A stretch of 64,000 bases of DNA from Mobula birostris (GCF_030028105.1 NC_092379.1:23987821-24051820); one strand, 5' to 3'. Positions 1,028-62,697 are shown, counted from the first letter of the stretch. Program-made: numbers and translations. Notes: generated by a model not told the origin, from the sequence alone.

Positions 1028-1040
1028 AGGCACTCTGTGA

Positions 1041-23451: not shown

Positions 23452-23489
23452 GGTTTTTCACCAGCTTTGCCGACTATTGTTTGACCATG
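23452..23489 (-). promoter_or_regulatory. Degenerate recombination signal sequence of V1
   Basis: CATGGTC - 22 nt - TGAAAAACC directly after the YYCAAS codons. Confidence 0.55.
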
Positions 23490-23780
23490 CTTGCTGCGCA
23501 GTAATACTCAACACCGTCCTCTACTCCGATGGGATTTATTTGCATGCAAACGTAATTTCCATATGCGCTAGTGTTCTGTCGGTTCTGAAGTACAGGAGCA
23601 TAGTTTGTATGAGAAGAATCGTAGTATTTCACCATCCATTCCAGACCTTTTCCTGGAAGGTGCCGATGCCAGCGCACCACTTATTCATCAATGGTCCCTC
23701 CCGTTATTTCACAGGAGAGGAGCGGAGTACCTCCGAACTCTGAAGAAGCAGAATAGGGCTGTGTCATCATGTGGTCAGAT
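23490..23780 (-). pseudogene. Divergent Ig heavy-like V segment pseudogene (possible TAILV-type)
   Basis: SDHMMTQPYSASSEFGGTPLLSCEITGGTIDE*VVRWHRHLPGKGLEWMVKYYDSSHTNYAP...EDGVEYYCAAS. The conserved Cys, Trp and YYC are present, with an in-frame TAA at 23681-23683. A leader-like remnant lies at about 23909-23950. Confidence 0.85.
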
Positions 23781-24269
23781 CTAATGGTAAGTCGTGATAG
23801 CATCTGATTAAACAAATTCATCGAGCAGTATTCTTTACACATGCAACTTTTTATAAGTCTGAACTCACAGCTCAACTCTATGAATTCCTCCTGAACACTT
23901 TACCTCATACCTTTGACAATATTGCTATGATAAAACAGATTATGCATCATATAAATCTCTCATTATCAGGTATACTTAAATTCACACGTAGTTTTGTTTA
24001 CACCAATAAAACCCCACGTTGTCACTAACGTAGTCTGATCCAAATACAGTCCTGATGCACGTCCTCTTCACTTTTTTCCAAGTATATTCTGATAATAAAG
24101 AGTAGGATTCATAAAAAAAGATGATAGCACTGACTCGGTGGGCACGACCTCGAGGGTAGTAACCTCTGGATTACTTCTACTGTTACTGGATCTGGCGGGG
24201 GGGGGGGGTGCGGTATGGGTTTATGATAGATAAATGCATGTCTGAAAAAGGAAACACAAATATTTTGAT

Positions 24270-25390
24270 CTATCTGGACTCCTTCTGAAGGGTGGGGGTA
24301 GGAGTGTTGAGGGGGAAGTCAATATCCAAATAGACAAATTTTCTCGCGCTATTTTTAACCTAGACTTTACACGTGATCGCATCGTACCAGAGAGGGAAAT
24401 ATAAAGTTGGATATGCTGTAGAATTTAGTGACAGGTTAAATCGGCACGTATAGCAGAAGAAAGATAGGGAACGAGGAACGTTTATTGTAATGGATTGTAT
24501 TTAGTTCAATACAAGTGGCGTGGTAAGTAAGACGGAAGATCTTGGGTGTTGTATAGTTATATACGATTGAAAATTTTATAGCCATGAAGGAAATACGGCT
24601 AAAGGAGGGATATGAAGGTCAACTAGATGATCGACGATACAAAGGCTTTAGGCAGGAGGAGAAAAAAAAGAGAGCGGTATGTTGAATTTTGATTAATAGA
24701 GATGGCCCAGTAATGGAAAGCTATTGAATTACTGATCGATTATCCAGTGAGCCTTTTTGAGTGGTTCTGAGAAATAAGAATGGAGGAATCGCATTATGGA
24801 CTTGGACTCTAGGCCGCCAAATGGTTAATGAGAATTAGAAGAGCAAATATACGGGGGACTGTGAAAAATTATAAGAATAATATGTTATCAAATTCGAGGT
24901 TTCAAACCTCGATGTCACAGGCTATGTCTGCCAAACTGTTAAGTTCTTTTTAAATGGGATATACTTTGCTAAGTACGTTGAGGACATTTTTTTTTTTTAC
25001 TCGGGGAAAACAGAATACCTTACGAGGAAGAGGACAAAGGTTGACTTTCTCTTAGGTAGTAGTGCCGGAGAGGTGACTGATGTCTCAGTGCGGGAGCACT
25101 TTAGGACCGGTGACCATAGGTCGATGAGCTTTCAAATAACTATGTAACGAGATAGAATCGGTCTACATTTTCAAGTTTTAAATTGGACTAAGGCGAATTT
25201 TGAAGCCGCGAGAATGTTGCTTGCAAGGATTGATATGAGTAGTGATTGGAGTAGTTTGACTGCGTGTAAAATGACCACAGGCAAATTAGGAAGCAATCAA
25301 AGAGAGATAGTGAGAGATCAATGTCTCAAGTTCCTAGTGCGATAATGGTAGGAGGACGGTACCCGAAAGGATGAGGGATATTGATGTCCT
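24270..25390 (+). mobile_element. Highly degraded CR1 fragments
   Basis: Nucleotide resemblance to CR1 3' and endonuclease-linker regions seen elsewhere in the window. Confidence 0.5.
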
Positions 25391-26890: not shown

Positions 26891-28700
26891 ATCAAAACTC
26901 ACCTTTTTTCCCTCTATTTCGAGGTACCAGACAAGGGTGTCCTCTTAGCCCTTTATTATTTGATATACCATTAGAACCACTAGCAATTGCTATTCGACAG
27001 TCTCCTAGCATTATTGGTATAACTCGTGCGGTAAAGTCTCATAACGTATCACTTTACGCTAATGATATATTTCCAATCCTCAAAAAGCTATCCCAGCAGC
27101 TCTAGATTTATTAGCCCAATTTAGTCTTTTTTTCAGGTTACAAATTAAATCTTAATAAGAATGAACTTTTCCCTATTAATAAGCAAGTTCCCTTATATCA
27201 GAACCTGCCGTTTCGATTGGTTAATAATTATTTTTCATATCTTGGGATTAAAATTACCTGTAAACATAAGGATTTATTTAAGGCTAATTATTTACCCTTA
27301 ATTTACCTTATCACACAACTTTCCTTTAAATGGTCTCCACTTTATTTAACTTTGACTGGTCGTATTAATGCTGTTAAGATGTTTATTCTGCCAAATTTTT
27401 AATATATATTTCAGGCATTACCAACTTTTTTTCCAAAATCCTTTTTTTGATAGACTCTAAAATCTCTTCACTTATTTGGCAAAATAAAAACCCGAGGTTG
27501 GGTAGAATACATCTACAGAAAGCTAAGAGAGATGGAGGCTTGGCATTACCTAACCTTAGATTTTATTACTGGGCTATTAATATTCGACACATGAAATTTT
27601 GGTTACTTGACCAAGATACACTATCCATTCCTAAATGGGTAGTATTGGAATTGCATTCTGTTCAAGGTTATGCACTTGGCTCTATATTAAGATCTTCCCT
27701 TCCCTCCGATTTGTAAAGGTATAAACAGGTTTGCAACCCGATAGTTAAACATCCCTTACGTACTGGATTCAATTCCGAATATTTTTTGATCTTAATCAAT
27801 TTGTGCTGGCGATTCCCATTATTGGCAATATATTTTTTTCTCCCCTCCTCTACGGACCGTGTCTTTCAAATTTGGAAGACTAATGGTACATCACGGTTTT
27901 CTGACTTATTTTCAGATGGCCTCCTTATGTATTTTGAACAGTTCTCTAATAAATACAATTTACCAAGAACACATTTTTTTAAGCTATTTGCACGTTAGAA
28001 ATTTCCTAAATACCATACTCTCTTCCTTTCCGGTCTTAACCCCCACCCCCCACAAATATTTTAGACGCTATCATCAACCTTAACCCGTTTCAGAAAGGTG
28101 TAACGACTACTATTTATAATACTATCATGGCATTTAGGAAAGCTCCATTCGACAAGATTAGGACTGACTGGGAAAGGGAATTGGGTCGTACTATCCTGGC
28201 TGAGGACTGGGCCTATATTTTACAACTTGTTAATACTTTCTCTATCTGTTCCAAACACTCTTTAATTCAATTTAATGTTGTCCATAGAGCACATATCTCT
28301 AAAGATAAATTAGCTCGTTATTATCCTCATGTTAACCCTCTTTGCGATAGATGTCATGGGGAGATAGCTTCCTTGACCCACATGTTTTGGTCTTGTCCTA
28401 CTCTGGAAACTTTTTGGAAAGACATTTTTAATATTATCTCAAATGTTTTGAATAGTGATATTTTCCCCCATCCTATTACTGCTATCTTTGGATTACCTAA
28501 AACTTCTAGTAATTTATCCCCCTCAGCGCGTAGAATGCTTGCATTTCTTACTTTAATAGCGAAAAGATGTATTCTACAACATTGGAAGGAGATTAATGCC
28601 CCAACTACGTCGTTTTGGTTCTCTCAAACGATGCTGTCTAAATTTGGAAAAAAAAAAAATCAGAAGTAATCTTTATGATACTTCAGTTAAATTTGGATAT
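26890..28700 (+). mobile_element. L1-clade LINE, 5'-truncated ORF2
   Basis: RGTRQGCPLSPLLF and VSLYANDI RT motifs; C-terminal CDRC...HMFWSCP zinc knuckle in ORF 28127-28669. Confidence 0.88.
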
Positions 28701-30139
28701 ATATCAATTATCTAATCGGCTATTCTGCTGAGGTAAATTTTCAAACAGCAAAATAAATGCAGAGAAACATGTTAAAGTTTGGGCACTAACTGGGTTCAAC
28801 GATCAGCGTAGTCTCATTTCCAAAAGTGAGATTAGATGTAACAGTGTTACACACAGTTACATCTTGTTATTAATCTTTCGGGGTTCCCCCCATATTTCCA
28901 GTTAACTGGCTGTCCTGCCTACCGATGATAAAGCAGGGACACGTATCGACAGGCTTCACTACGCAGCAGATTCAGAAGTGAAAAGACCCTCCGAAGCGTA
29001 TCCCATAGTCTGTGAGGGCAGCTCACCAGTGATAGGCTCCGCTCCTCTCTAACGTATTAATTTTCAGCACATGGACAAAAAAAAAGGAAGATTTCTGCAT
29101 CTAAGCGGCGTTTGAAGCTAAGCAGTGGGGATGTCAATGTATAGCACGAAGGGATTAATGTACGGCAACTGATTGCATTTCAATTGTTGTACGTATATTA
29201 GCCCCAAAGTGAAATAAGTCAACACAAAAACCTTTCTCTCAAACATATGCCCATATACATAGCCTTTTCAAGTCAGTGATCACGTCGCGAAGAGCTTCAT
29301 ATGTTACTGAATAAAATCAAAATCATATGAGAATCAGTGACAGTAGATGTCCGAAATCGGTGCCAGTGACAAGGCCTGTTCGGGACCAGGGCATCGAATG
29401 GTTGTAAGCTTCACGGCACTTCATATATGCTCCAATGTTCATGGTCGATGCAATCCCCATTTCCAAACTCGCCTCGAATTATTAAATGACCAGAGAGTTA
29501 CCGATTCCAGCACTGGATCCTTATTTGCCCGCTGAGCCCTTACTGTCGAATGGGAGTGAAGAATTCGGACAATTAATAACGCTCCCAGTAATGAAATTTC
29601 TGCCAATTCTGATCTTGCACATCAGAGCTCTTAAACAGAGGAGGAGCCCCGATTTCAGGATTACCCAGCCAAAGGAGAATGCTGTCCTATGCAGAATATA
29701 GTGTGCCTTAAAATAGTTACCGTTTTAATCTCCAGTAACGCAAGGCCATTGATACACAACATCCATTCTTTTGTGATTATTACTCATCAACTAAACACAA
29801 CTACTACTCCCAGTAATTCCGGTTAACAGATTTACACGACCCTTATCAAGTATAACACCACTCTGTTGTCCTGAATTCAAAATTTTCTTTGTGTAACTGC
29901 ACGTTATATTCTACTCCAATGTTCTCTCACGGAAATTGTTCTGCAGCTTTCTCCTCCTTTCACCCATTTCTTGTAAAGCTGAGTACATAACAATCCTGAC
30001 TTATCGGGTACGTCTTCCCTCTCTGCATTTGGTTATTAGTAGGTTACTTAGAAGAGGTTCATTTGTTTGTGTTTTTTTCCCACTCTATCACTGTACCTAT
30101 TCAATCTGTGACAAAAGCACCATTTTCAACAGCTTAGTT

Positions 30140-31800
30140 CAGAATCAGGTTTATTATCATCGGAATATGACATTATCCTGAAGAAACGTTGTATCACTTT
30201 TTTTTTAAATGCATACATTTCTAAATGACAGTAAATTAGGACTGAATGTGTCCTCATAATCTAATCTAATATGACGTGAAGATTGTTAACTCAGCAGCAG
30301 TTCAATGAAATAACTAAACTAGCAGAGAGAATAATATTAATAATAAATAAAATAAAACATAGCAAACAAGTAGATGAATGATGAATTTTGATTAGATTTA
30401 AAAAATGTGCAAAAACAGATATACTGTATACTGAAAAAAGTAAGGTCGTGTCCAAAGCTTCAATGTCCATTTAAGAAACGGATGGCAGAGGGGAAGGGGC
30501 TATTCCTGAATCGCTGAATGCGTGCCTTCTGGCTTCTGTATCTCCTACCTGATCGTACCAGTGAGAAAAGGGCATGCCCAGGGTGTTCGAGGTCCTTACT
30601 AATGGATGCTGCCTTTCTGAGACACCGCTCCCTAAAGATGTCCTGGGTACATTGTTGGCTAGTGCCCAAAATGGAGATGACTAGAATTACAACTTTCTCC
30701 AGCTTCTTTATGTCCTGTGCATTAGCACCTTTACACCAGACAATAATGCAGCCTGTCAGAATGCTCTCCACGGTACAACTATATAAGTGTTTGAGTGCAT
30801 TTGTTGACATGCAAACCCTGTCTTGCCTTCTTTATGATTGCATCGATATGTTGGGACTAGGTTAGATCCTCTGAGATCTAGACACCCAGGAACTTGGAGC
30901 TGCTCACTCTCTCCACTTCTGATCCCTCTGTGAGGATTGTTACGTGTTCCTTCATCTTCCTGAAGTCCACAGTCAGCTCTTTCGTCCTACTGACGTTGAG
31001 TGCCAGGTTGTTGCTGCGGCACCATTTCTGCAGTTGACATATCTCACTCCTGTACGCCCTTTGGTCACCACCTGAGATTTTACCAAAGATAGTTGTATCG
31101 TCAGCAAATTTGAAGACGGTATTTGAACGATGCCTATCTACACAGACTTGTGTATATAGAGAGTAGAACAGTGGGCTAAGCAGACACCCCTGAGGTTCGC
31201 CATTGTTGATCGTCACCGAGGAGGATATGTTATCACTAAACCGCACAGACTGTAGTCTTCCGGTAAGGAAGTTGAGGATATAATTGCAGAGGGAGGTACA
31301 GAGTTTTGCAACTTTTCAATCAGAGTTGTGTGAATGATGGCATTAAATACTGAGCTATAATCGAGGAACAGGATCCTCACATAAGTGGTCTAAAGCCTTC
31401 TGGAGAGCCATTGAAAATGTGTCTGCCGTTGAGCTATTGTGACGATAGGCAAATTGCAATGGGCCCAGGTCTTTTCTGAAGCAGAAGATCAGTCTAGTCA
31501 TAACCAACCTCTCAAAGCATTTCATTTCTCTTGATGTGAGTGCTACCGGGCAATAGTTATTAATGCAGCCCACATTACTCTTCTTGGGCACTGGTATAAT
31601 TGTTGCCACTTTGAAGTAAGTGAGAACTTCTGTCCGTGTCAGTGAGAGACTGAAAATATCTTTGAGTACTCCCGCTAGCTGGTAGTCACACGTTTGCAGA
31701 GCCTTACCATGCACTCCATCGGGACCTTCTGCCTTGCGAGGGTTCACTCTCTTTAAAGACAGTCTAATATCGGCGTCTTGAGACAGAGATCACAGGGTCA
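30140..31800 (-). mobile_element. Rex1/Babar-like LINE, present only in duplication copy A
   Basis: ORFs 31355-31747 (CFERLV, LGPLQFAY), 30878-31246 ([14 protein letters not shown]) and 30460-30810. Confidence 0.85.
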
Positions 31801-32492
31801 TCAGATGCAGCGTTTACCCCATCCCCACCACCCACCCACTCTCCCATTTTAATTTTCATCAAACTTACTTTGTCTCGTTCCACTTCTGAAGACAACTCCT
31901 TGAAATAAAACGATAACGCACGTTTCACTTTTGCCATGGATACGGTCTGACCTCTTGCGGAATTCAAGATTTATTTTTGAAATTCCACAGACTGCATTGT
32001 TTATGAGGAGGGTGTTTCCAGGGGGGTGATAACGACTCAAACATTAAATTCTATTGACAGCGTCCCCTGAACTTAACAGTCTAATCGTTTTGACATGGAG
32101 TGCAGTTAAGTACATAGGACAGCACGGGAAGAACCGATTAACCCCCCCCCCACCCCGCCGCCATACCTGTGGCATCATCATGCTGGTTTTTGGTAGCATA
32201 ACTGCTTACATTCTGCGACCATTCCCCTACATGGTGAATGATCTATCAAATTGTCCCTTAAAAGTTATCATCGCACTCGCTTCCACAATTTCTTTTAAAC
32301 TTCCAGTCACTTTCCACTCTTCTCATATTTTATGTCTCATTTAACACCTTTGGTAACATTGCTGTCATCATAAATCTATGTGCCGAGGATTTAATGTTTC
32401 CAACTTGGTATAAAAACGCTGATTATCTTCCTAATCATTATCTCTCATTTTATACATTTTACCATGTCGGCCATCCGCCACCACTGCTCAAG

Positions 32493-32525
<33 letters not shown>

Positions 32526-32719
32526 CAACAACAACAATAATAACAAAACCTAACTAGTTTGTATAAGCTCCCCTGATAGATCATACACTCCAATACAGAA
32601 AACATGCAGGTCACCTTTTCTCCACCATATCGAAAGCCTTACATCCTACCTAAAACGTGACAACGCGAGCGAGAACGACAGACAATACTGAAAATATGAT
32701 CGAACAATTTTTTTATATA

Positions 32720-34870
32720 TAAGACCATAAGAAAAATGAGCAAAATTAAGCCATTTGGCAGAAATAGTCTGTCCCGCCATTTCATCATGTCTGATCCAAT
32801 TTTCCTGTCCGTCTCAATTTATGCCTTCTCCCCATATCACATCATGCCCTGACGAGTCAAGAATCTATCAGCCTCCACAACTATCTGAGGCAAACAATTC
32901 CACAGATACGCCACTTTCTGACGAATGAAATTTCTCCTCATCTCCGTTCAAAAAGGATGCCTCTCTATTCGGAGGTCTTAGGCTCTCCCACCAGAGGAAA
33001 CAACCTCTTCGCATCCACTCTGTCAAGAGCTGTCACTATTCGATAGGTTTCAATGAGACAACACTGCATTTTTTTGAATTCTCGTGAATAGAGCCCTAGA
33101 GCCATCGAACGATCTTCACATGGCAAGCCATTGAGTACTGGAATCATTCCCGTGAATCTCCATGGACTGCTCTACAGTTTCAGCACATCTTTTCTTTGAT
33201 AAGGGGCCCAAACCTGCTCACAATACTCTAAGTAAGGCCTTACCAGTAATTTATAAAGTTTCAACATTACACCTTTGCCTTTCTACTCTGGTACTCTTGA
33301 AATAAATGCCAACAATACATTTGCCTTCCTCAATACAGACTCAACCTGCAAATTAAATTATAAGAAATCCTGCACAGGGAATCCCAAATCCCTTTGCAAC
33401 ACGTTTTCGGTATTTTCTCTAAATTTAGAAAATTGTCAATCCTTTTTTTTCCTTTCTTCTACCAGAGACTCTACACTTCTCAACACGATATTCCATCTGA
33501 CATTTCTTTTCCGATTCTCCAAATCTGTATAAGTCCGTCTGTAGCCCCTTTGCCCCTCAGTCTACTTGCTCCTCCTCCATCCGTCTTCCTATCGCCTGCA
33601 AACATTTTAACAAGGACATCAATTCCATCATCCAAATCATTGACAATAATGTAATAAGAATCGGTTCCAACACAGACCCTGTGTAACGCTGCTAGTCACC
33701 GGCAGCCAGCACGGAAAGGCTAACTTCATTCTCAGTCTTTTACCCGCTGCCAATAAGCCACTGCTTTATGTATGTTAGAATCTTACATGTAATACCAAGA
33801 GCCCATAGCTCATTAAACTGCCTCCTGTGTGCTCCCTTGCCTAAGGCCTTATGATATTCCAAATTCACAACAGCAGCTGATTTCTCCCGTGTCTATCCTG
33901 TTAGATAATTCTTCAAATAATTCCAACATATTTGTCAGGCAAGATTTTACCTTGAGGAAACCATGCTAACAATGGCCTATATTATCATTGGCCTCCAGGT
34001 ACCCTGAGACCTCAGCCTTAATAAACAACTCCAATATCTTCCCAACCACTGATATCTGACTAACCTTCCTATAGTTTCCTTTCTTCTGTCTTTCTCCCTT
34101 CTTGAAGAGACGAGTGACATTTGCAATTTTCCAGCTTTCCGGAGCCATTCTGGAATCTAATGATTATTGCAGGAGCATTCCTAATGCCTTCACAATCTCT
34201 TTAGTAGCCTCTTTCCGAACTCTGGGGTGTACACCATCTGGTGCAGCTAAACTACCTAACTTTAGACCTTTCAGTTGCCTAAGAACATTCTCTCTAGTTC
34301 TGGTAACTTCACACTTGTCATGCTCCCGACACCTAGAACATTCACCCTACTGCTAGTATCTTGCACAGCGAAGACTAATGCAAAACGCTTATTCAGTCCT
34401 TACACCATTTTATTGTCTCCCATTTACACCTCGCCAGCATTGTTTTCCAGCGGTCTGATATCTAATCTTGTTTTTCTATTACACAATACGTATTAGAAGG
34501 AACCTATGGTATGCTCTTTCATGTTATTGGCTAGCTTACTTTTGTATTCCATTTTCACCTTCTTAGTCACTTTTAGTTACCTTCTGTTGGTAATTGAAAG
34601 CTTGCTAATCATCTAACTTCCCATTAGTTTTTGCCCTATTACATTTCCCCTTTTTGGCTTAGTTGACTTTTACTTACCTGTTAGCCACAGCTGTGTTTTT
34701 TTTCCCCTTTAGAAGTAATTTTCTTCTTTTGGACGTATATCTACTGCCTTCCGAATTGCTTTTAGAAATTCCAGCCACTGCTGCTCTGCTTTCATCACTG
34801 CCTATGTTCTTTTCCAGTAAAACATCAGCCTCATTACTTGCCAACATTTATACTCAATTACATGTATGAT
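32720..34870 (-). mobile_element. Old CR1 remnant shared by both duplication copies
   Basis: CR1 RT-like peptides (33966-34148, 32965-33147); counterpart at 54820-56830. Confidence 0.75.
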
Positions 34871-35880
34871 AACCGTATTTATACTGCACGCGTCCTTTGG
34901 CAACCGCCTCTCAGAGGACTAAAACGTAGCCATAGAGTTTGGGGATTTTGCGTGCCTTAATGACCAGTGGGCTTTTTGCTTTGTCACTGGGAAGGGTCAT
35001 GCCAAACAACTCAAAGGATAGAGGTCTTTTCTCGGCAGTACTAATCTGTTTTCATGTTTTCTCCTGCTCCACATCTCTCTGAATCCACCCTTGTGTCTCT
35101 CTATTGGATAATTGTGCCCGCGGTATCTCCCATTCAGTAACATCACCAGAACAGACTATCGAATTGTTCTCAGCTTGAGGTTTACGGATTCTATTGTGTG
35201 CAGAGTCGCTCCACATTCCCTATTCCACAATAGGATTGTATTTTGAATCTACTTCATTGACTGTGACGTGCTGGGGACACTATGAAGTGTGTTTTGTAAA
35301 TGTTTGAATTTTATCTTGAAACCAGTTTTACTGAATCACCAGTGTCATTGTTAATGTTGGAAAGTACTTGTTAAACAAACTCAGTCGGGGGTGGAGGAGG
35401 GCGGAAAATTGAAGCTATTCGCTCTCAGTGAACTGATAATATTCCGTTCATTTGAATCATAAAGTTTAACTCATGTCCCGTGAGTATGTGATGGGACAGG
35501 TTGGAGCAGCTTCGCTCTGTGTGTAAGCCCTGCTGCTCCTGTCCTGGTTAGGTTGGGACAGTGCAGAGGGACGTTTGTAACAAATCAATTGATGCCTAGA
35601 CACTACACGGAGCTGTAGCCGAATTTAAAACATGCTCTGTATAATCTGGATTGCTTGATGGAATCGCTTTGAGGAACAATTGCCTAGTTTTAAATAATAA
35701 ATACACGTTCCGATGTAGGACGGAACAGAGAGTGAGGCCATTCATCCGTTATTTTCTGCGCGTTAATTCGATTATCTTCAACGTGAAAACAGAGGACAGT
35801 AAACACTGATCCCAATAAGATGTAACTAAACAAATCCATTGTTGTCACTGACAGGGAACAAGATAAGCTGCAACAAAACC

Positions 35881-36043
35881 CTGAACCGATAGGCTGGTCC
35901 TGGACTTATTTCATAATTTACTGGCATAATTTACATATTACTATTTAACTATTTATGGTTCTATTACTATTTATTATTCATGGTGCAACTGCAGCGAAAA
36001 CCAATTTCCCCCGGGATCAATAAAGTATGACTATGACTATGAC
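35881..36043 (+). mobile_element. Short LINE 3' end with (ATGACT)n tail
   Basis: AATAAAG followed by TATGACTATGACTATGACT; absent from the paralogous site near 60360. Confidence 0.6.
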
Positions 36044-36816
36044 TAACCCCAGACCATGGGTTCAGTCAGTTCTGAGTATAATCACCTAGATTTGAACCAA
36101 ATAGTGAGCTCACTCACCATAATCGTTTGGTGTCAAGGCACATTCTGGTTACAAGATCCGACCCCTTTCCCGTGCAGTCTGATCCTGGTCTGTGGACTGT
36201 TCTCTGGTGGGTTGGGGTATACATCCATGTCCTGTTATTGGGCTGGAGAGAAACCCAGCCGGTTCGGGGAGGTCATGCACTTGCGCTAAATTTCTCACTA
36301 ATTTCAGGTGAACCAGAATCAGAATCAGAATCAGGTTTATTATCACCGACATGTGACGGGAAATTATTCACCGCCTTCGCCAACACCGTATATTAATAAA
36401 ATGCAAGCAGGTGAAGATGGATAGAATTCAGAAGATTGACTTATGTGAAATCACTGTCAACGTGGTTCATCCGCCCAGTCGGCAAGATATTCACACCGCC
36501 TTGGGTCTTCACACACCCACTGCAGCGACATAACTTGCATGTCACATCCAAAAATCTCAACACCTGTCAAAGTGATTCCTGAAAGCACCGAGAGCAGCTG
36601 CATCCTGGATTTCCATCCCAAACTCCGAGCTTGGCTCTTCTCGGCGTGTGAGCAAAGGAGACATCTTTAGAGTTTTTCTGTGTGAACACATCGGTTCCCG
36701 GCGTCCCCCGGAAACAGAGTCGAATCGTTATGAGCTTTTCATTGCCTAGAAATGGCCTTTTGGCATAGCAGTCGAGTCAGGCTTCTGTGATTTAACTCTG
36801 CGAGCCAGATCCCCAC

Positions 36817-36859
36817 CGCCGTGGTCGATATCACGGTGCTGCACCGCAGGTAATAAACT
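36817..36859 (-). pseudogene. D-segment remnant
   Basis: Minus strand: AGTTTATTA - 12 nt - CACCGTG - ATATCGAC - CACGGCG. No properly spaced 3' nonamer. Confidence 0.4.
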
Positions 36860-37319
36860 GTCTTTATCCCATCCAGCCCTAAACCAGTTGAAACCCATAG
36901 TCAGCCGGTTGTCTCATTAACCCTCCTGCACCTCACTTCTCTGTCCGGGTGTCCAGGTCGTGAGTCTCAATCGTGGCTATCCTAGTTCTGACATGCAGAA
37001 GATACGATCAAACGGGTTCTTTCACTGGGATTTCACTGACAGCTGTTCCATGCTTGTTCCGTCCCGTTCCAAAGACATCTCAGGTTCTCCACTCGGAATC
37101 CGATTGATATGCATGGGTCCCACTGTAAAGGCCGACGACGGCGTCCGAAAGCCCAATTTAAATAGTTTTGTTTTTTTGTAACCTTTCAGCGAGGCCCGCA
37201 CCTGTCTAGGCTGATCGGTGAGCCCATTCCCACTCACGACGCTTAGCTCGGAGCTGCCTGTGACTTGATCCAGTGAACACCTCGGTGCATCCATCCAGAA
37301 TATCTTCTCAGGCATTGAG

Positions 37320-39390: not shown

Positions 39391-39445
<55 letters not shown>

Positions 39446-44421: not shown

Positions 44422-44460
44422 GATTTTTGTCGCAGTTCAGATCCGGTCCCTCTCACTGTG
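44422..44460 (-). promoter_or_regulatory. 23-bp-spacer RSS of V2
   Basis: CACAGTG - 23 nt - ACAAAAATC. Confidence 0.95.
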
Positions 44461-44927
44461 TCTCCCGCACAGTAATAGGTGGCCGTGTCGTCCAGTTTGA
44501 AATCATTCATTTCCAGATAAAAATGTTGCTGCTGTACTTGGAAGCGGTGAACCGGCTCTGGACTCCAGGCGCGTAATACTTGCGGTAACCATCTGTTCTA
44601 TACGCTACCAAGTACTCCAGCCCTTTCTCGGAAACCTGTTTCACCCAGCTAATGTAGTAGCTGTTGATCTTGAACCAACTGACTGCACAGGACAGCCTGT
44701 GGGACTGTCCGAGCTTTCCCACGGCTGTATTGGGCTGTGTCAGCACGATGTTGGACCACACGTCTGTCAATAAAAAAAAAAAAAAAGAGCAGACGTTAAT
44801 AAAATATTGCACGGACATAGGTTCAGATATTCTCCGAGAAACTGGCAGTCCAGGTTGGGCGAGAACCCGCGGGACACCTACTTGCCAGACAAGACAGGAG
44901 GAGACAGAGATAAGGAATGACCCCCGT
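44461..44927 (-). pseudogene. IgW-family VH pseudogene (leader exon 44882-44927, intron 44764-44881, V exon 44461-44763)
   Basis: The leader begins ACG instead of ATG (TGVIPYLCLLLSCLANVWS). NIVLTQP...SHRLSCAVS...WVKQVSEKGLEY...YAPGVQSRFTASK is followed by a frameshift in a T-run (about 44519-44523), then YLEMNDFKLDDTATYYCAG. Confidence 0.92.
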
Positions 44928-45600: not shown

Positions 45601-48600
45601 GGGTAGGAAAATGCATTAAGCAGCAATTGAGTGATCACACAATCTTCTGTCTGCAGCAATACAAGGATAATCAGTATTAAACGAAAATCCCTGGGTGGAA
45701 ATGTTTGTAATGTATACTGATGAGGAATGTTCTTGTTAAGAGGCTTAACAAATTAATTTGAACTCCAAGTTCTGGGCACATCACGCTTCACCACTGTTAG
45801 AAGACTCTCTGAACTGCCTTCGCCGGTGAGAGGAAAGAACATTTGATGCAGGGAGATCAGGAGCAGAGCAGAAACAGTTGTTTCTGGTCACACTGTACTC
45901 CTCAGCAGATTAGGAGACAAGGGCTGCAGAACGGGTTGATATTGAAAGAAAAGTCACCGGGGTGAACATCCAAGGCGCAGACCAGTAGACTGGATAAGGT
46001 TGTTTACACAACCCGATGACGGCGGTTCTGCGTGTACTAAATTTTGCATCCTCATTCAAATATAAACTGCTGTGATAGAATTACTAATGAGACCTAAGAT
46101 CACCCCTTCCAAGGTGATTTACAGTCGCTTAGCATCTTTCATGACTTTAGGACAAGCCAGAGCAAGTTCTGCAGAGAATGAAGAAATTTTTTGAAGTGGA
46201 GTCATTGTTGACAAGGAGGGAAGGTGTTACAAAATCCAACCTCTCTGAAGTAGTAATAACGTATAAATAGATCAGGCATTCTGCAGTGTTGGTTCAGGGG
46301 TCAATGTTGGAACAGATAGTGGTAACCTTTACAATCGTTTTCTGTAGCCATGGCAGGAATTAAAATGGCGAACATTGTTTCTTTCCTCCAAAGGGACGAC
46401 AACCCTGTCGTAGTGTCTGGAATATTACGTGCCTCAATGACCTAAAGATCTACGTATCTGGAGTCAGGACATTATGCTTTGGGTCTTTGCAGGATCATCC
46501 ATGTCAAACAGGTCAAAGGATAGAGGGCAGATTAAGAGTGGTCACTGCGCAGTGGTAAGAACCCCGACTGGTCAAAAATTATTCGGGAAACAGCAATGAA
46601 AGATCCTTGTTCAACGTATCTGTGAGCGACGGTGTTTCTGAGTCTCCTTATCGGATTTGCATGACTGACAGTGTTGAGAACCGCGAGGAAGCTACGGGTA
46701 CCATGAACGAAGCTATGAACATCGCCATGATAAATATCAAAATTGGTTTTCATAATGTACGAACTTGTCTGGCCTAGCATCCCTTCGATATGAGGCGGAA
46801 GTGAGGGCTCTGAACCACACCTGGAGCACAATAGTGAAGATGATGGAGGCAGACACTAAGTAGCCCAACGATACCAATGTGCCTGCCTTTGATCGTAGAC
46901 TTCCCGCTTGCATTTGCCGGTACAAATGCAATACCTTACCCTTCTGCAGATTAAAACCTGACCTCTAATTTCTCTGCCCAAGTGGTCTGTATCCAGCTGA
47001 GTCCACTTGGCAACATTTTTCGTCAGCCAAACCCTACAATATGTGTGTCTTCTGCAAACCTAATTAACCTAATCACTACACTTTGCCTTCCATAGCCAAG
47101 CCAACTTTACATCCAATTTATGAAGTCTCCATGGAACCCACGTGTCATAATCTTCTAGGTCAGTCTAACACCATGGATCTTGTCGGATTTATTATAGGAC
47201 ATGTAGACAGAATTCACTGCTCCAACCACACCACACATCTTCCTTATCCTTCAAAAAACATATTTCTTTTCAAAGGCATGCTCTCCTGTGCATAAAACCC
47301 TTCTGGCCAACATTAATCGGGCATACCGACTGTGTCAAACAGTGAGGCAAGATGTATCTTTCATGTATAATTACAGCAGGCACCTGTTGAGGTAATTGGC
47401 ATCGATCAGTGCTATAAGCAGTCGCCGATCCTATGATTACTTTTGTTGAGAATAAAATTCCTTGGACGGCAGCGTAGCACAATCTGTAACGTGGTTATCT
47501 CAGAGATCCAACGGGCGGCTTTCATTCATGACATCGGGTGTTGTCTGTGTGCACAGTTTCCTCGTTCTCTTTGTGATTTCCTGTTTTTGAGCCGGGTGAT
47601 CCGGATTACGCCAGATTCAAATAGCAATTTTAGCTCATTTGCTTTGGCTAACTGAAGCTGAAATAAAGTACTTCAATGCATACAAAGCCATGGTGCTGTG
47701 AAGTGGCGGATTCAATTTCATTGGTAGGGCGTTTAGTCCTAAAGCAGCACAGCTATTTCTTATATGTGATTGATTCTGAATTATAGAATGCAGATGTTGT
47801 AAGACTGAAAAAAAATATTTAAGGTGATTGAAAGCCAGCAGAATCTGGAGACACCACAGTACAAATAATGATTCACTGCGGTAAGTGAGATACTTGCATT
47901 ACCATTATCAGCGGTACAGTGCCGGATGGCAAACTCTGTGCTTTATTTATTATTATTTTCAAAGGAAAATCATGGAATAACAGAAAAGTGCATGTTTTAA
48001 CTAAGTTAATATGAGGATTCGGGGTTATCCTGATGCAACTTGAAGACATGATAAAGCACTATTCAATATCAAATCACACACCCGATTTAAAGAAAACTCA
48101 CTTACTTGGCACAACTGTCAGCTGAGTCCTGGCTCCAAATATTAGCTTCCTTCTGCGAAGTAAGAATGAGTTATTGAAAAATTTGCTAATTGACTAGAGA
48201 CCCCCATTAAAACATTGACATTAACGGCCTTTTGTGCTGTTTTCAAATCGCGGTCTGTCAGTTAATTTTAAATCTTTGCACTAATTGATAAAGCAAGTGT
48301 CAGCTGAAATTCTGTAACTTTGCAGCAAAGGGAGGGCTGTATTCGTATGGTAGCCGAAATTGACTTCAAACATAAACATAGGGATTTGAAACTTACAGAC
48401 AAGTCTGCCATCGCAGTACCAATGCCAAATGTGGTCTTAACAGTCGTGTGCAAGTAAATCATACAACAGCTGTCCTTCCAGAACACCCCAGTGAAGCAAA
48501 GGGACATTAAAAATAAAATCAAATCTGCATGTACTAGAAATCCAAGCAACACACAAAAATCTGGAGGAACTTAGCAGGCTAGGCAGCATCGATAGAAAAG

Positions 48601-50573: not shown

Positions 50574-50609
50574 AGTCGACGTTTCAGGCCGAGACCCTTC
50601 GTCAGGACT
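50574..50609 (-). ncRNA. Minimal hammerhead ribozyme (intact core)
   Basis: Same sequence as 10434-10469. Confidence 0.8.
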
Positions 50610-51811: not shown

Positions 51812-51847
51812 AGTCCTGACGAAGGGTCTCGGCCTGAAACTTCGACT
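51812..51847 (+). ncRNA. Hammerhead ribozyme copy with disrupted stem III
   Basis: AGTC-CTGACGA-...-GAAACTTC-GACT; the ACGT palindrome is changed to ACTT. Confidence 0.65.
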
Positions 51848-54819
51848 GCACCTCTTCCTACAGATGTTGCCTGGCCTGCTGCGTTCACCAGCAACTTTGA
51901 TGCGTGTTGCTAGTATTAGTCCTAGTCGCAGCAGTAATAATCATAATAACCAAAGGAATATTCCGAAAGTTCCGAGCAACTGATAATTGAGTGTGCTGCC
52001 ATGTCCGTACCTCGGATTTTAACAGCCTGAAGTAAGAAAAAAGGCATTGTTTGCAGAATGATCGTCATTTTGAAAGCTCTTCCAAGGAATTATTCTTCCA
52101 AATTCTCCAGTATATTACGGAATTATATTACTCAGTAGCTAGTATAATACTCTAAAAATTGGTGTGTATTTATATGAACTGGCTAGATGCAATTGTACCA
52201 GCTTTGTATCATTGAAATCAAAGTTATGGATAACAAAAGATGATTATAACTTGCACAGATTGTACTTATAAGCTATAGCTTACTTTTGTCAAGTCCATCC
52301 GAGGACCGAAAAGTAGAGAAAGCAAAAGAAGACCTATCGATGAAGGTTTGAGAGTTCATGTGACTATAATCCAATTTCAACGAAGCCTGGAGGGAGACAC
52401 GTATGTCTCACACACGCATTGTTAAGTTGGTGAAGAGTTGCTAAATTGCTCCGAATGGTTCTGCTTGCTGGTCAGTGGAACACTGCTCATCAGCACATTG
52501 AGGAATGTACACATTCTACAACATTCCTTGAAGCACCGTCACTTGAAATACTGGAGACTGAAGTGCAGTACTCGACTGACCATCACAGTTCTTATCGCTT
52601 TCCTAACCAATTTGATGTATGCCAATTATCTAATCAGTTATTCTCCTTATAGGAAAATAAGAGAAGCGTAGCATGTTAAAGTTTGACCACCTACTTGGTT
52701 CAATGATCAGAGTAGTTGCATTTCCAAGAATAAGCTTAGTTTCCATCGTGTTACAGTTATATCTTGTTACAAAATCTTTCGGGATTCACTCCACATTCCC
52801 CGATAGCTGGCTGTCTTGTCTTCCAATGATATAGCCGGTCAGGAAAGCACGATTGCCTCAACCAGTGAGCAACCCATGTAATAGGATCAAAGCTTCGATA
52901 TTCGGTGGTTGATAAAGAACAGAAAATGGTCCTTAAATGCAGCGGAAATTTCCTGGCTGCCAATGCCGCTTGATATTAACCGATCTGCCGTTAGGACGAG
53001 GTGCTGCGGCTGAGAAGTTAATGTTTGGTCGCGGATGGCATTGCAGATTCTGTGTCTGCCACACACTTTGTTATACGGCAATACAAAAACTTTCTCCTTG
53101 ATGTTACCCGCAGGGACACGTGAGGAAATGCCCCACCGCACAGTGGATTTGAAAAGAGAGAGAGAAAAATATAACTTAACGAAGCGTATCACATGAACTG
53201 TGAACACAGTTGATCAGTGATAGGAACAGCTTCTCTCCAACGGAATAATTTTTAGAATTCACAAAACAGGCTACATGCATTCATCAGGGAACAGGTCAGA
53301 ACGAGCACAAGGATAATAGAAAAAAAACCACAAGACTTCCGCATCTAAGCAACATTTGAAGCTGAACAGTGGGGATGTCAATGTATTGCAACTCGGAGGT
53401 TAATATGCGGCAGCTGATGGCATTTCATATACTGTGTGTATCGTAGTCCCACAGTGAAATAAGTCAATACAAAAATCTTTCTCTCAGTCACTTAGCCATA
53501 CACATAACGCTTTCAATGCAGTGACCACGTCCGGAAGAGTTTCGTGTGAGTGTTACTGAATGAAATAAAAACTGTATGAACAACAGTGCCAGTAGACGCC
53601 CAGAATCGGTGTCACTGACAAGACCTTTAAGAGGGTCCGGCATCGAATTGCTGTAGGCATCACAGCGCTTCATGAATACTCCAATATTCATGGTCGATTC
53701 ATCCCCCATTTCTGAAAACTTTTCGATTCATTAAATGTCCGGCGAGTTAACGAATTCAGCCCTGGATACCTAATTGCCTACTAAACCCTTGTAATCGAAT
53801 GGGACAGCAAATTTGCAAAATCAACAATGTTCCCAGTAATGGAATTTCTGATAATTCCAATCCTCCAAGTCGGAGCCCGAACTTCGACTCGTTTTCGAGA
53901 ATATCCTGCCAAAGAAGAATGGTAGCCTATGCAGAATACTGTCTGCCTTAAAATAGTTACTGTTCTTATCTCAAGTGATACTCGTTGATTCATACACGAC
54001 ATCCATTCATTAGTGATTATTCCTCATGAACTAAACACAATAACTACTCACAGTAATTCTGATTAACAGATTTATACGATCCTCATCAAACACAACACCG
54101 CCGCGCTATCCTGAATTCGAAGTTTTCTTTGCGGAATGCACGATATATTCTACTCCAACGTCTGCTCCCGAAAGTTTTCCGCGGTTTTCTCCCCTTTTCA
54201 CCCTGTTCTCGGAAAGTTGAGCTCACAGCAATCTTGGCTTACCGTGCATGTCTTCCATCTCTGCATTTGGTTGTTGGAAGATAATTTTAAATAAGTTTTA
54301 TTTGTTCGTATTTTTCCTCTTTAACTGTAGATATTCACTCTGCGACAAGAGAATCATTTTTGCAGCTTATTTCTACGGTCAATCGGGCTTGTCACCCCAC
54401 TTCTGATTGTCTCTGAAATCTCGCCATCGTGTTCACTTCCACAACTTCTCTTACATTTCCAGTCCCTTTCCACTCTCCGCAATTGAATGTCTCGTGTAAC
54501 ACTTTTGGTATCCTTCCTCTAATCATAAACCTATATGACCGAGGATATCACAGTTTCACCTTGGCATGAAAACGCTGACTATCTTCCCTGTCATTATCCC
54601 TCATTTCACGAATTCTACCAGGTTGGCCATCAGCCTCCAGTACTTAAGATAAAGAAATCCTAGTTTGTGTAAACTCCCACCATACACTCCAATTCAGATA
54701 ACATACCGGTGACCTTTTCTGCGCCATATCAAAAGCTTATCATCCTGCCTAACATGTGATGACGAGACGAGAACGACTCACAATATTCAAAATGCGCTCA
54801 AGACACAATTTTATATGAA

Positions 54820-56830: not shown

Positions 56831-57767
56831 TGCACGATAACTGGCTATATATTGTTGGCGTCCTTTGGCACATTTCTTCCCAGAGACTAAAACGTAGCCA
56901 TAGGGCCCGGAGGTGTTGCGTGCCTTAATGAATGGTGAGCAGTGTGATTTGACTTTTGGAAGGGTCATTCATGCCAAACAGGTCAAAGGGTAGAGGCCAC
57001 ACTGAGAGTAGTCTACCGGTCCTCTAGGTTCGCTGGCTCTGATCAGCACAAACAGTCAGTACTAGCAAAAAAAAAAAAAAAACAAAAACAAAAAAAAAAA
57101 ACAAAACAAAAATCCCCACCATGACGTAATACACTGCTGAAGTACTTGCTGGGCTCGGAAAAGGCCTGGGATGTTCTGGAGTTATAGAAGTCCATGAAAA
57201 TAAAATTGGTTACATCAAAGTAATTTCAGTAAATTAAAAAAAAAAAATAGAAACAGCGGAGTTGCCAGTATTCAGACTAATAGAGTTTGGTGGAAGTCCA
57301 CTAATGTGAAACATTAACTCTCTTCTTCACCCCACAGATGTTCTCTTAGATTCTCATTGTTGGCAGTGCAGAAAGAACAATAATATTAGTCGGCGAAGTT
57401 TTCAGCTAGATATCTCTTACATCCCGTGCCCAGTAGGTGTTAAGTATGATTCTGTCTGGATCAGTGTTCCTCTGGTTCTTACAAAGCCACCCATCAAACT
57501 GACAGCAGGTTTCTGGGGTGAAGAGTAGAGCTGGAGCATGGTAGATCTGTCGAGTACTGCTGTGGTAGAGGGTGGGATTGGAGATCGGTGGATTACGTGG
57601 CTGCTTTTGTGGAGAGGAGAACTGGAGCTGGTTGCGTCAACACACAGTAAATTTATAATGAAAAAAATACACAGTTGTTTGTAGAAAATTATCGATGGTG
57701 AATCAGCAGGTGGGGTGAAAATCGGTCTGAGTTTAGTCTGCATTGTAATAAATTGACAGAACAGCGG

Positions 57768-58912
57768 TGTCAAGGTCCGGTCTCTGAAGTCCGCATCATG
57801 GTTCACGGACAGGTCCATCGATACTTATTCCAGGTTTTCCGGTTTTCCCTTCTGTTGGGTGCCTAAATTGAAGCACATGATTCTTATTTTGGGCTGACTA
57901 CATAAACAGCTCCTGGGTTTAGCTTCATGCTCGACAGTTCCCACCCCTTCCCCTTCCTTCTGAAACCCCGTCTGCAACCTTCGCCTGAAGCCTCGCCTGT
58001 AACGCCATCAGGTTCAGCAGCCGGGGCAAGCTTGGGACCTTGCTGTGTCTAGATAAGGAACTGTCTGTCGTTGTCTGGAACTGTCTGTTTGTGTTCTCGC
58101 CTTCGCTTAGTAGGTCCGGCCGTTGCCGCTACCTAGTGTTGTGAACCGTCTCTTCGTGTTCAGCACTCTGGGTAGAGTCCCGGGCCCAAGTCCAGTTCCC
58201 AAGGAGGGGTACTGGCTCTGTGTTCCATGTACGAGTACGGGCCCTAAGTCCTGTTCCCAAGGAGGGGCCCCAGCTCTATGTTCCATGTCCCTGTGTTCCT
58301 GTCTCTCAAGTCCAAGGCTCCGTGTTCCCGTGCTATAGACCAAGGATCTGTGTTCCTGTCCTCCCCAAGACCAAGGCTCTGTGTTATGCGTTCCTGTCGT
58401 CCCGAGTCCAAGGTTACAAGGTTCCTGTAGTCCCAAGTCCAAGGCTCTGCTGTTCCTGAGTACCAATTCAGGGCTTCGTGTTCTCGTCCTGCCCATGTGC
58501 TTCGTCCGGTAGTAGGGTTCCCTCGTCCTGTGCTGGGGTACCCTCGTCCTGTCCAGGAGTCTCACGTCCAGTCCTGTTGCTAGTCCTCGTTCTGTAGCCA
58601 GGTCTTCTCCTCGCCTGGATCCAGGGTCCGAGGCACTAGCCAGGACCAAGGTTCCGGGTCCCTTTCCAGTCTCTGGCTCGGAGTCCTTGTCCAGCTTCCA
58701 GGTTCCTAGTTCCTCGTCGAGGTGCTGCTTTACTTGTCTAGTCGCAGCCCAGGCCTTGTATCCTAGCCTCGTCCAGGGCCTGTGTCTTGTCCAGCGTCGT
58801 TTCTTCCCCACGTCCCTTGGTTTCCTGACACACCTAGTCCTATTCCTTGTACTTCAGTGTCTGTGTCTTGCATTTGGGTCCTCCACCAGCGCCCCCCCCC
58901 CCGCCCCATGAC
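57768..58912. mobile_element. Solo LTR-like element (Gypsy-type)
   Basis: TGTCA...TGACA termini; internal degenerate tandem repeats; related to 38763-39973. Confidence 0.7.
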
Positions 58913-61900
58913 AACTGGATTGTATGGACAACAGCTGGGTAATAGGAGGGAGGAGAAAATGGCGGCCCGACGCAGAGCACGCGGCCGTTCCGAATGAATG
59001 TCCATTATGTGTAACTAGGGGGCCGTACACAATCCGGATTTGATGGAGACAGGCGTGAGAGGCGCAGAGGAACATCTGGAGTAACTTCTGGAGTAACTTC
59101 TGAAATGCCTGCTTCGCTGCCGCTGCTACTGTGTGATCGATAATCTCTGGAGACGAAGGCCCCAAATCCTCGGCTTTGCGTATCCCCCGTTGCCAGGGTT
59201 GGGGTCGAAGTGCTCGGCAGAGATGGTGCTCAGTTCTCGGTGTCGAAGAAGTGGTCGGAGGCTCGGAGTCGGACCGTGGTCGGATGCTTCTGGGATACTG
59301 CATTCGCAAGTTGGAGGCGATGGAGGTTTACTAAATGCATGAATTACTAAATGGCAATAAAAAGGGACTGCATGCCCCCATAATTATAATCAAAATAGTA
59401 CTTATACATCATCTGGAATCTGAGCGTTACCGGTAATGTCATTTGTGTTGTCATGCAGAAGGTATTTGGCGACAAACAGATTGATGGTCGAGGAGTCAAA
59501 AACAGGCTCGAAGATTCAGCTTGAGAAATCTTCTTCCTTTTCAGACATCACTAAACATCAGTAAAATTGAATGTGCATCATTTGTAATGACTCGATTTTA
59601 AGAACATACACATTATTAAGATGGTGTACATCTGGCAACAGATCCAAATCATTTGCAGATCATTATTAAATGAATTAAAACTTGACAGTTTCGTTAGTGT
59701 GAGATCCGTGGAATGTCCATCCTTCTCACTGCGCTACTCATCTATTTTCGTGTACTGCCTCGTTTCCCATCTCTCTGAATCCAACCTTGTGTATGTCCAT
59801 TGGAAAATGTGTCCGTATTGTCCTTGGTCAATATTTCTCCCTCAGTAACATCACCAGAACAGACTCTTTGATTGTTCTCACCTTGAACTTTCTGGATCCT
59901 GTTGTGTGCAGAGAGGTTTCACATTCCTGACACTACAACAGTTGCAATTATGTCATTGTCTGTGAGTTGCTGGGGAAACCATGAAATGTGTTATGAAAAT
60001 GTCAGCACTTACCTCAAAACCACTTTTACTGAATCACCAGTAACGCTGTTCATGTAGGAAAACACTTGTTAAACAAACCCAGGCGGGGATGAAGGAGGGC
60101 AACAAATTAGAGGGGCTAATCGTGGGATATCGCCTATACGTTTGCTGTATGTTGGTACAGACCCTACATTATGGGACTGATTCGTACTGATGCCCTGCGG
60201 ATGTTGAACCATCAGCCATTCCCTCAGAATATGTCTTAATCCGATCATCTTCAACGTGAATGCAGCGGAACGTAACCCCTGATCCCAATGACTTGACACA
60301 GAAAAAAACAAATCATTGCTGTCACTCACACGTAGCACGTTAAACTGCAATGAAACGCTTAGCCCCTGACGGTAGATTTAGTCGGTGCTGAGTAGCATGA
60401 CCCAGCTTTCAGTCAAACAGTGAACTCACTGAGCAAAACCGTCTGGTGTCAAGGCACAGTCTGGTGACAAGATCCGACCCCATTCCCCTGCAACCTGTTC
60501 CCGGTCTGTGGACAGTTCACTGATGGGGTAGGATAGGTCCCGTTGTACCGTTACTGGGCTCCAGAGAAATCCAGCTAGTTTGTGGAGGTTCATGTACTTT
60601 TTCTAAATATATCACTGATTTCAGGTGATTCACTGCATTCGCCAACACCGAAAATTAATAAAATACTAACGGGTGAGGATAGATTTCAGAAGTTGGACTT
60701 ACCGGAAATCACTGTCAACGTGGTTCATCCGCTCCGTTTGGCCAGGTATTCACACCGCTCTTTGTCGTCAATTAGCCAATGCAGTAACTTCACTTGCCGG
60801 TTACTGTCAAGAAGTTCTGAAATGGTCCAATTGCGGAGTGAGAAACACTGAAGTCGATCGATACTTCATAGACTTTAATGCGAACAGCGTTAAACGGGAA
60901 AGAAAACAATAAACGCTAGGCCAAACTGGGCTGTTAACTAAAACACTCAATTGAAAAACGAAGCCTACCGTGCAGCTGAAAAGCACAACTGACAATAAAC
61001 AAATGCCGGTAGTCTTCAGTCAGTCTTCACTCGACAGTCCAATTTTTCAGGCAAGGCAGAATGCAAAACAGGCAGTGATGCGTTACTGTGTCCAAGACTT
61101 AACAAGTACCATGACGGAACGAATGGAGTTAAATACTATCGCAATGAAATAATTAGCTGACACATGCATATTCACGAGTGCAATTGCCGACTCTGCTGCG
61201 CTGCCGAATCCTTGGTTTTGACAGTCACATGCAATAATCTCAACACCTGTCAGCATGATCCCTGTCCGAACCGCGAATAGCAGCATCCTCGATTTCCATC
61301 CCAGACTCTGAGCTTGGCTCTTCCTGGAGTGTGGATTAAAGAGGCATCTTCAGAGTTTTCCTGTCGGAGGACACCAATTTCTGTCGACCCACAGAAACAG
61401 AGTCTAAGCTTTATGAACTTTTAATTGCCCAGCATAGCAGTCTAGTCAGGCTTCTGTGATTTGGCTCTGGTGAGCAACAGTGCGGATGCCATGTAGACTG
61501 ACGGCGCTGCTGGTTTGTCGGGACCAGATTCTGTTCACACCCCCCCCCCCCAATATCGTCGTCCAATCATCGAACATTACCACAGCTTGCAAATCGCCTT
61601 TAACCCATCCAGCCTGAAAATAGTTGAATCCTCGAGTCAGCCGGCGGTCTCAAGAACCCTCCCAGCCCTCACTTCCGTGCCCCGGTGTTCCACCCAGTGA
61701 GACTCGATATCGGCCATCCCAGTCCTTACATGGAGTGTATCTGATCGAACGGGATCTTTCACTGGGCATCCATTGATCCTCGCTGGGAGCCACTTTTCCT
61801 CGGTTGTTCTGTTCGCTTCCAAACAGATCTCCAGTGGTACCTTTACCTGCTCCTAGATTATCCACTCGGAATCTGATTGATGTGTCCCAGTTTAAAGGCC

Positions 61901-62207
61901 GGCGTAGGCGCCCGAAGAGACCAATTTAAATAGTTTTATTGTTACGCAGCATTTGGGTGAAGGCCCGGAACCTGACGAAGTGAGGGTGGGGAGGGTTCCT
62001 GAGTCCGCTGACGAAGTATATAGGTGACGCTATCCACAAAGAAGCTTGTCTCCGAGCTGCCGTGTGACGCCATCCTCTGAAAGCCTCGGTCAAGCCATTC
62101 AGCACTTCCTGTCTCACAACATATTTTCCCTCGTGTGGACGCCCGAACCTGCCAGATGGACAGTAATCAAGCTGTGGCGATCTGTCTTGCCCTTTCCGTT
62201 TTCGGTG

Positions 62208-62246
62208 GGTTTTTGTCCCGGTGCAGTCGCATTCTCTCTCACCGTG
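62208..62246 (-). promoter_or_regulatory. 23-bp-spacer RSS of V3
   Basis: CACGGTG - 23 nt - ACAAAAACC. Confidence 0.95.
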
Positions 62247-62697
62247 TATCGCACAGTAATATGTGCCTGTGTCGCGCAGTGTCAGGTCGTTCATTTGCAG
62301 ATCAAAACTGCCTCTGTCCTTGGAAGCGGTGAACCGTATCTCGATTTCAGGCGCGTAATACTTATTACTTTCACTATAATAACGTACCAACGTTTCCAGC
62401 CCTTTTCCAGAGGCCTGTTTCACCCAGTACGTGTGGAGGTTGTTGATATTGACACCACTGACTTCACAGGACAGTCTGTGCGACTCTCCGAGCTTTACGA
62501 CGGCTGAGTCGGGTTGCTTCAGCTGGATGTCGGACCGCACGTCTGGCAAGAAATACAGAGCAGCGATTAATGAAATGACCCGGAGGCATAGGCTCCAAAG
62601 GCTTAGAAAAGCCGGCTACCCCGGTTGTGCGACGGGCCGCGGGACACATACCTGCAAGACAGAACAAGAGGAGACAGATATAAAGGACGATACCCAT
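62247..62697 (-). CDS. Potentially functional IgW-family VH segment (leader exon 62652-62697, intron 62543-62651, V exon 62247-62542)
   Basis: The spliced frame is open for 114 codons: MGIVLYICLLLFCLA-DVRS-DIQLKQPDSAVVKLGESHRLSCEVSGVNINNLHTYWVKQASGKGLETLVRYYSESNKYYAPEIEIRFTASKDRGSFDLQMNDLTLRDTGTYYCAI. GT-AG phase-1 intron, conserved Cys/Trp/Cys, adjacent RSS. The leader resembles chondrichthyan IgW leaders. Confidence 0.92.

Follow-up and report, generated by a model that had tools for sequence, protein, structure and literature searches.

The window analysed, a stretch of 64,000 nucleotides of Mobula birostris DNA (GCF_030028105.1 NC_092379.1:23987821-24051820), carried three variable (V) segments of antibody heavy-chain (VH) type on the minus strand, and is probably part of an old array of tandem VH cassettes within a ray's alpha/delta locus for T-cell receptors (TCR), feeding its intact segment, V3, to TCR delta-type chains. 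V3 was transcribed, spliced and V(D)J-rearranged, and its transcripts were not sterile read-through. The joining (J) segments of the cassettes were relics that appear, from their peptide matches, to be of TCR alpha/delta type. An earlier sequence-only reading had proposed an antibody V array in a TCR delta locus; VH-type cassettes with no usable J or constant (C) segment, the TCR-type J relics and the rearrangement of V3 spoke for that proposal, and we infer the position in the TCR locus, a C-delta partner for V3 and the use of a diversity (D) segment named here D_B.

V3 (Table 1) had an open frame with the C..W..YYC pattern and conserved Cys23, Trp41 and Cys104. As expected of a VH V gene, it had a split leader with a phase-1 intron and a 3' recombination signal sequence (RSS) with a 23-bp spacer (23-RSS). 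It matched the Pfam V-set family with an E-value of 4.4e-16 and 59.5 bits (cut-off 26). In PDB it matched 8965 sequences, of which the best 60 were all antibody constructs, and among these 60 every top-scoring V3 stretch displayed aligned to a VH domain. Within one single-chain diabody (scDb) the VH domains scored 67 and 54 bits against V3, and the light-chain variable (VL) domains 22 and 18 bits. V3 was thus closer to antibody VH than to VL or TCR V domains in PDB, in agreement with the VH type assigned earlier to the V segments. The motifs GESHRLSC and RFTASKD may be IgW-like.

Searches with tblastn, using V3 and V1 as queries, returned exactly three V segments (V3, V2 and V1), all on the minus strand and separated by 17.8 and 20.9 kb, which bore out the co-oriented arrangement at 17-21 kb described from sequence; of the three, only V3 was intact, and V2 and V1 were pseudogenes. 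The same queries found no fourth V inside the 64-kb window. The upstream flank of V2 (45346-46539) was found again at 88-1037 and 3520-3706, and the homology of 88-1037 to that flank fits a further V expected just beyond base 1, where the flank of another V had already been noticed.

Public RNA runs were available for the source species, here organism A, and for a close relative, organism B, and their contigs were aligned to the window. The share of V3 sequence words present was 0.47 and 0.19 in the libraries of organism A, and 0.10 and 0.09 in those of organism B. Contig X5 (389 nt, no mismatches) was spliced from 62652 to 62542 across a GT..AG intron, followed the genome as far as 62248, a single base short of the heptamer, and beyond that had 52 nt of non-genomic sequence. 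In contig X10 the match reached 62243, after which came 30 non-genomic letters. Two contigs of organism B (X11 and X12) ended at 62246-62248, and one of them had the same leader-V splice. RNA depth was at most about 1 over the V3 intron and the flanks at 61319-62137 and 62840-63073. Since the contigs left the genome exactly at the border between V and RSS, V3 was rearranged.

The tails of X5 and X10 had no match longer than 10 nt in the window, D_B, J_B and J_C included, and the partners to which V3 was rearranged lay outside the window. The 30 read letters of the 52-nt tail of X5 were, in sense orientation, GAGACGGGGGCTCTGACTCGGGGGAAGCTT. In one frame the tail ended in ..LTRGKL (GGG AAG CTT for GKL), which resembled a TCR J before IFG and was that of neither J_B nor J_C. 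The junction of X10, ..GCGATACACG.., can be read either as the end of V3 followed by heptamer letters or as a fragment of D_B.

The copy of V3 in organism B had five base differences and an open frame; the changes were P10L, I68R and D80Y, plus one conservative and one silent leader change. Tyrosine in place of D80 and arginine in place of I68 restored the usual residues of framework 3 (FR3; ..RFTASKD..FYLQMN), with contig sites at 62303, 62338 and 62512. Because the residues of organism B at 68 and 80 were those usual in FR3, the comparison suggests that the allele of the source species is the derived one. At 62348-62381 an X10 contig with a depth of 66 had only the FR2 core in common with V3 and continued as ..PGQGFEWLV..; this contig belonged to another VH family, one that is expressed more abundantly and is transcribed at some other place in the genome.

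The segment D_B carried the only strict RSS with a 12-bp spacer (12-RSS) that the RSS scan found in the window. About 390 bp past it lay a second, weaker D-like element, which was deleted in the V2 cassette, and J_B followed about 330 bp further on. J_B was found by reading the sequence 3' of D_B, and J_A and J_C by a looser motif scan. A strict scan for FGxG or WGxG J segments with RSS scoring returned nothing credible in the window. The strict criterion missed the J relics because each had one broken residue in the FGXG motif: LGNA in J_B, FGAR in J_C and FGNE in J_A. A WGxG heavy-chain J (JH) was found in the window by neither the strict nor the looser scan. J_A, J_B and J_C each had a phase-1 GT splice donor, and their 5' heptamers had lost the terminal GTG; the broken motif residue and the decayed heptamer mark all three as relics. 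The sequence-only reading had found no J segment, and this did not hold, given three J-like relics with donors at 52.7, 48.1 and 28.8 kb.

A profile made of the three J peptides was compared with 177,635 distinct PDB sequences. The best 60 matches were all TCR alpha or delta chains aligned over their J region, and the first of them was a human delta chain with V-delta-1 (LTRADKLIFGKGTRVTVEP). Antibodies, although very common in PDB, where V3 alone had drawn its thousands of matches, were absent from these 60. Individual J peptides gave no matches in PDB. In the literature, the third complementarity-determining regions (CDR3) of human TRDJ1 usually end in TDKLIF.

No constant exon had been seen between the V segments, and none was found here. 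When every open frame was scanned for Ig-domain patterns, no Ig C-type open frame was found anywhere in the window, and inspection of the 71 minus-strand frames of at least 42 aa after the J segments found no Ig constant domain, a length limit that shorter relics could escape.

Sensitive self-comparison of the window revealed the collinearity of the cassettes. Apart from the downstream body of the V2 cassette (Table 1), 62207-63119 was collinear with 44421-45352. The gap between the two collinear blocks was 264 bp on the V3 side and about 7.2 kb (37176-44420) on the V2 side, the extra DNA consisting of an inverted 830-bp repeat pair, a fragment of a long interspersed nuclear element (LINE) and simple repeats. 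The repeat unit was therefore V, about 8.7 kb of intervening DNA, and D-(D)-J. What had been taken for a paralogous unit with no V, at 28690-37175, was the 3' part of the V2 cassette, with V2 following after the insertion, and the units described as V(-D) only carried relics of V-D-(D)-J. Within the window, V1, V2, D_A and each of the three J segments had decayed. The LINE and other insertions stretched the V spacing to 17-21 kb.

Because the cassettes were 68-77% identical and V3 was common to a second species, their duplication is old and not a recent expansion of this lineage. The possible expansion in this lineage that had been suggested from sequence was not favoured by these identity values. 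V-D-(D)-J scaffolds bearing a TCR-type J carried the V segments, which suggests that the array grew by duplicating a unit of VH, D and TCR-type J, rather than by importing whole antibody clusters. This association of V segments with V-D-(D)-J scaffolds and TCR-type J may be a new detail.

The two pseudogenes differed in kind. V2 shared 59% amino acid identity with V3, its leader start had changed from ATG to ACG, and a 2-nt insertion in FR3 shifted its frame. The 23-RSS was retained on V2 as on V3: that of V2, at 44460-44422, was well kept (CACAGTG-23-ACAAAAATC), the heptamer being perfect and the nonamer intact at 8 of 9 positions. V2 words were nearly absent from the RNA runs (share at most 0.09). 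V1 shared 37% amino acid identity with V3, had a TAA inside CDR1, a decayed RSS and no recognisable leader, and was a separate, different V placed between the cassettes. About 400 bp 3' of the V2 RSS, at 44020-44040 on the minus strand, TACTACAATACTGGGTGG was followed by CACGGTG; D1 lies at this distance from V in the Ig clusters of sharks, and the insertion cut the element off at about 43992. The element may represent either the remains of an Ig-type D or a piece of a V end.

Under the preferred reading of a VH array in a TCR alpha/delta locus, each cassette would once have been a V...D-(D)-J unit with a TCR alpha/delta-type J. V3 retains an open frame, leader, splice sites and a 23-RSS predicted to work. 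In lymphocytes, RAG would delete the intervening DNA in the minus direction and so join V3 to D and J segments outside the window, and D_B (12/23, 53.4 kb) may also take part in the joining. The V3 transcript would then be spliced to a constant region, most likely that of TCR delta, to give a chain whose V domain is of antibody type and whose constant region is that of a TCR.

Several observations weighed against this reading. The PDB E-values of the J profile were marginal (0.01-0.4), so that its weight came from the uniformity of the matches. The V3 contigs were short unitigs for which an identical V3 paralogue could be the source, and none reached a constant region, C-delta, C-alpha and an Ig constant region all being possible. 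The junction of X5 would be out of frame with a TGA if its 30 read letters adjoined V, and in frame if they were distal. The V-to-D distance of 8.7 kb was unlike both the classic Ig minicluster and the typical TCR-delta layout. The contigs' lack of a constant region would also suit an orphon graveyard, in which dead remnants of IgW or IgM miniclusters have no TCR role and V3 transcripts are sterile or joined to an antibody cluster elsewhere; so would the death of V1, V2, D_A and every J segment, a window with no C exon found, and the D-like remnant at Ig-cluster distance, about 400 bp, 3' of V2. This explanation was judged unlikely, because the J relics were TCR alpha/delta-type and not WGxG JH-type, in each of four runs the V3 transcripts left the genome precisely at the edge of the RSS, which argues against sterile read-through, the X5 tail had a TCR-J-like GKL, and the V3 frame was open in the second species. 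The promoter position told the same way: no Ig octamer stood there upstream of V3 or V2, and the three octamers in the window were no more than expected by chance.

The J profile matched alpha and delta J regions alike, and V genes in TCR alpha/delta loci can be common to both chains, both of which would suit a V3 that serves TCR alpha, or alpha and delta, rather than delta only. Such use is quite improbable given that a 12/23 D sat in the cassette and that TCR-locus VH-type V segments of other vertebrates have been reported with delta, alpha having been argued to be shielded from them (PMC12227049). In a scheme of double rearrangement, as in NAR-TCR or TCR-mu, a VH-D-J unit rearranged within its cassette would splice from its J to the next, leader-independent V, itself joined to TCR-delta D-J-C, to make a two-V chain. 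V2, which lay 3' of J_B, had lost its leader ATG, and V1, 3' of J_A, had no leader, as that scheme would have it. The phase-1 GT donor of each J relic also fitted the phase-1 acceptor of the V exons, a match that carried no weight because phase 1 holds for all Ig-superfamily exons. Every J segment here had a damaged motif and a dead RSS heptamer, the frames of V2 and V1 were broken, V3 was expressed with its own leader spliced and with a junction tail that was neither J_B nor J_C, and no J-to-V joint appeared in the RNA, where reads were compared at V3 only; double rearrangement is thus highly improbable. Very unlikely, too, is a reading in which the cassettes derive from self-contained VH-D-J units with TCR-delta-type J, whether intact neighbours in the array still splice each J to the next V or the units are relics of a VH-using, cluster-type TCR delta that preceded the translocon. 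A two-V receptor or cluster-type TCR-delta relics, if real, would offer a ray-side view of the exchange of parts between antibodies and TCR delta, and the two-V variant would be a VH-based receptor with two V domains, analogous to NAR-TCR or TCR-mu.

An array of VH cassettes that serves TCR delta has precedents. VH genes linked to or within the TCR alpha/delta locus have been described in elephant shark and nurse shark, VH-to-TCR-delta rearrangement is established in sharks, and a stingray is reported to have IgH linked to TCR alpha/delta (PMC12227049). Nurse shark, as related in PMC12227049, has IgH V and TAILV segments within its TCR alpha/delta locus, and these give rise to VH-TCR-delta chains (Deiss et al. 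2019; Criscitiello et al. 2010; refs. 33 and 26 in PMC12227049). The window shared with nurse shark VH-type V segments that have a 23-RSS, lack their own Ig J or C and probably lie among TCR elements, and rearranged expression with a TCR-like J start. It differed in coming from a ray, in its repeated V...D-(D)-J cassettes with TCR-type J relics, in that most of its members were dead, and in that the join to C-delta, documented for the nurse shark chains, is here a probable one. The linkage of IgM, IgW and IgNAR with TCR alpha/delta in shark and Atlantic stingray (PMC12227049) likewise brings antibody- and TCR-type segments into one region with interspersed V exons; there, intact V(D)JC miniclusters lie near the TCR locus, whereas here no C exon was found and J was TCR-type.

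With the chondrichthyan IgH minicluster (V-D1-D2-J-C) the window had in common the VH 23-RSS, a 12/23 D with a second D-like element about 390 bp and a J about 330 bp on, and tandem units. The V-to-D distance was 8.7 kb here and is a few hundred bp there, and J was FG-type, ending in ..VEP or ..VVP and not in WGxG..VTVSS. Since neither a WGxG JH nor CH exons were found, the locus is not a classic IgH minicluster. The VH-delta systems of birds, frogs, coelacanth and monotremes also use an antibody-type V with TCR delta, as V3 with its presumed C-delta partner would, and the second TCR-delta cluster of birds (VH-delta-D-J-C) is a comparable small unit of VH, D and TCR-type J; these systems are single clusters or few genes with a live C-delta, in contrast to the many cassettes with no C here. 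NAR-TCR of sharks and rays and TCR-mu of marsupials and monotremes resemble the window in their tandem V-D-J with a J donor preceding another V, and differ from it in that J-to-V splicing was not observed in the reads at V3, and V3 has and uses its own leader.

The window likely belongs to the class of VH segments in a TCR-delta locus. The arrangement is already known from sharks, and here a ray example is given. An antibody-type V that serves TCR delta indicates that, early in the history of vertebrates, only a porous boundary separated the receptors of B cells from those of T cells. Records of VH-TCR-delta use come from sharks and far less from rays; the window adds a ray case with direct read evidence for splicing and rearrangement of V3, and leaves current views standing.

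Table 1. Positions of V, D and J elements and cassette blocks in the window, counted from its first letter.
Feature	Position	Strand	Description	Evidence
V3	62208..62697	-	Intact VH-type V gene	Sequence, RSS scan, Pfam, PDB, RNA contig
V3 leader exon	62697-62652	-	Encodes MGIVLYICLLLFCLA	
V3 intron	62651-62543	-	109 nt, GT..AG ends	
V3 V exon	62542-62247	-	Cys23, Trp41, YYC	
V3 23-RSS	62246-62208	-	CACGGTG-23-ACAAAAACC	
D_B	53398..53477	-	D segment with 12/23 polarity	
D_B 12-RSS	53477-53450	-	GATTTTTGT-12-CACTGTG	
D_B coding	53449-53437	-	13 nt, GGACTACGATACA	
D_B 23-RSS	from 53436	-	CACAGTA-23-ATATTAACC	
Possible second D relic	53040..53091	-	AGTTTTTGT-12-CAAAGTG, short coding, CACAGAA	
J_B	52695..52790 (segment 52752-52696)	-	..TKLILGNATTLIIEP then GT donor; 5' RSS decayed	
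J_C	48104..48200 (segment 48163-48107)	-	..RKLIFGARTQLTVVP then GTAAGT donor; 5' RSS decayed	
V2	44422..44927	-	VH-type V pseudogene	
V2 cassette downstream body	28690..37175	-	Collinear with 52609-61943 of V3 cassette, 68-77% identity	
D_A	29180..29240	-	Decayed D_B copy: GGTTTTTGT-12-CACTTTG; 3' heptamer lost	
J_A	28791..28885 (segment 28848-28792)	-	..SNLTFGNETTLIVEP then GT donor; J_B paralogue	
V1	23452..23790 (start approximate)	-	Divergent VH-like V pseudogene	
V2 upstream-flank homologue	88..1037	-	Matches 45346-46283	

Two short blocks immediately 5' of the leader, GCCTGAGCTGAAG and CGATCTnAAAAGTGT, were kept between V3 and V2 (62700-62790 and 44930-44990, minus strand) and are candidate promoter elements of the V family. 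In the DNA inserted in the V2 cassette, the inverted repeats of about 830 bp at 40563-41396 and 43164-43992 were 86% identical, with internal repeats of 130-260 bp between them. An open reading frame (ORF) at 41601-42062, also in the insertion, matched no Pfam family, and a GA-rich microsatellite at 39230-39510 read (ER)n when translated.

The window had no runs of N and held many retroelement ORFs on both strands. The ORF of a repeat family of about 1 kb had no Pfam match at an E-value of 0.01 or better; its sequence, ..CVRCSRCGLLYIGETRRRLGDRFAEHLRSV.., presumably resembles the GIY-YIG nuclease motif of Penelope-like retroelements. The family had at least five copies on both strands, among them 1042-2203, 10340-11520, 21465-22462 and 50480-51911, and was recently active, since the copies were 85-97% identical to one another.

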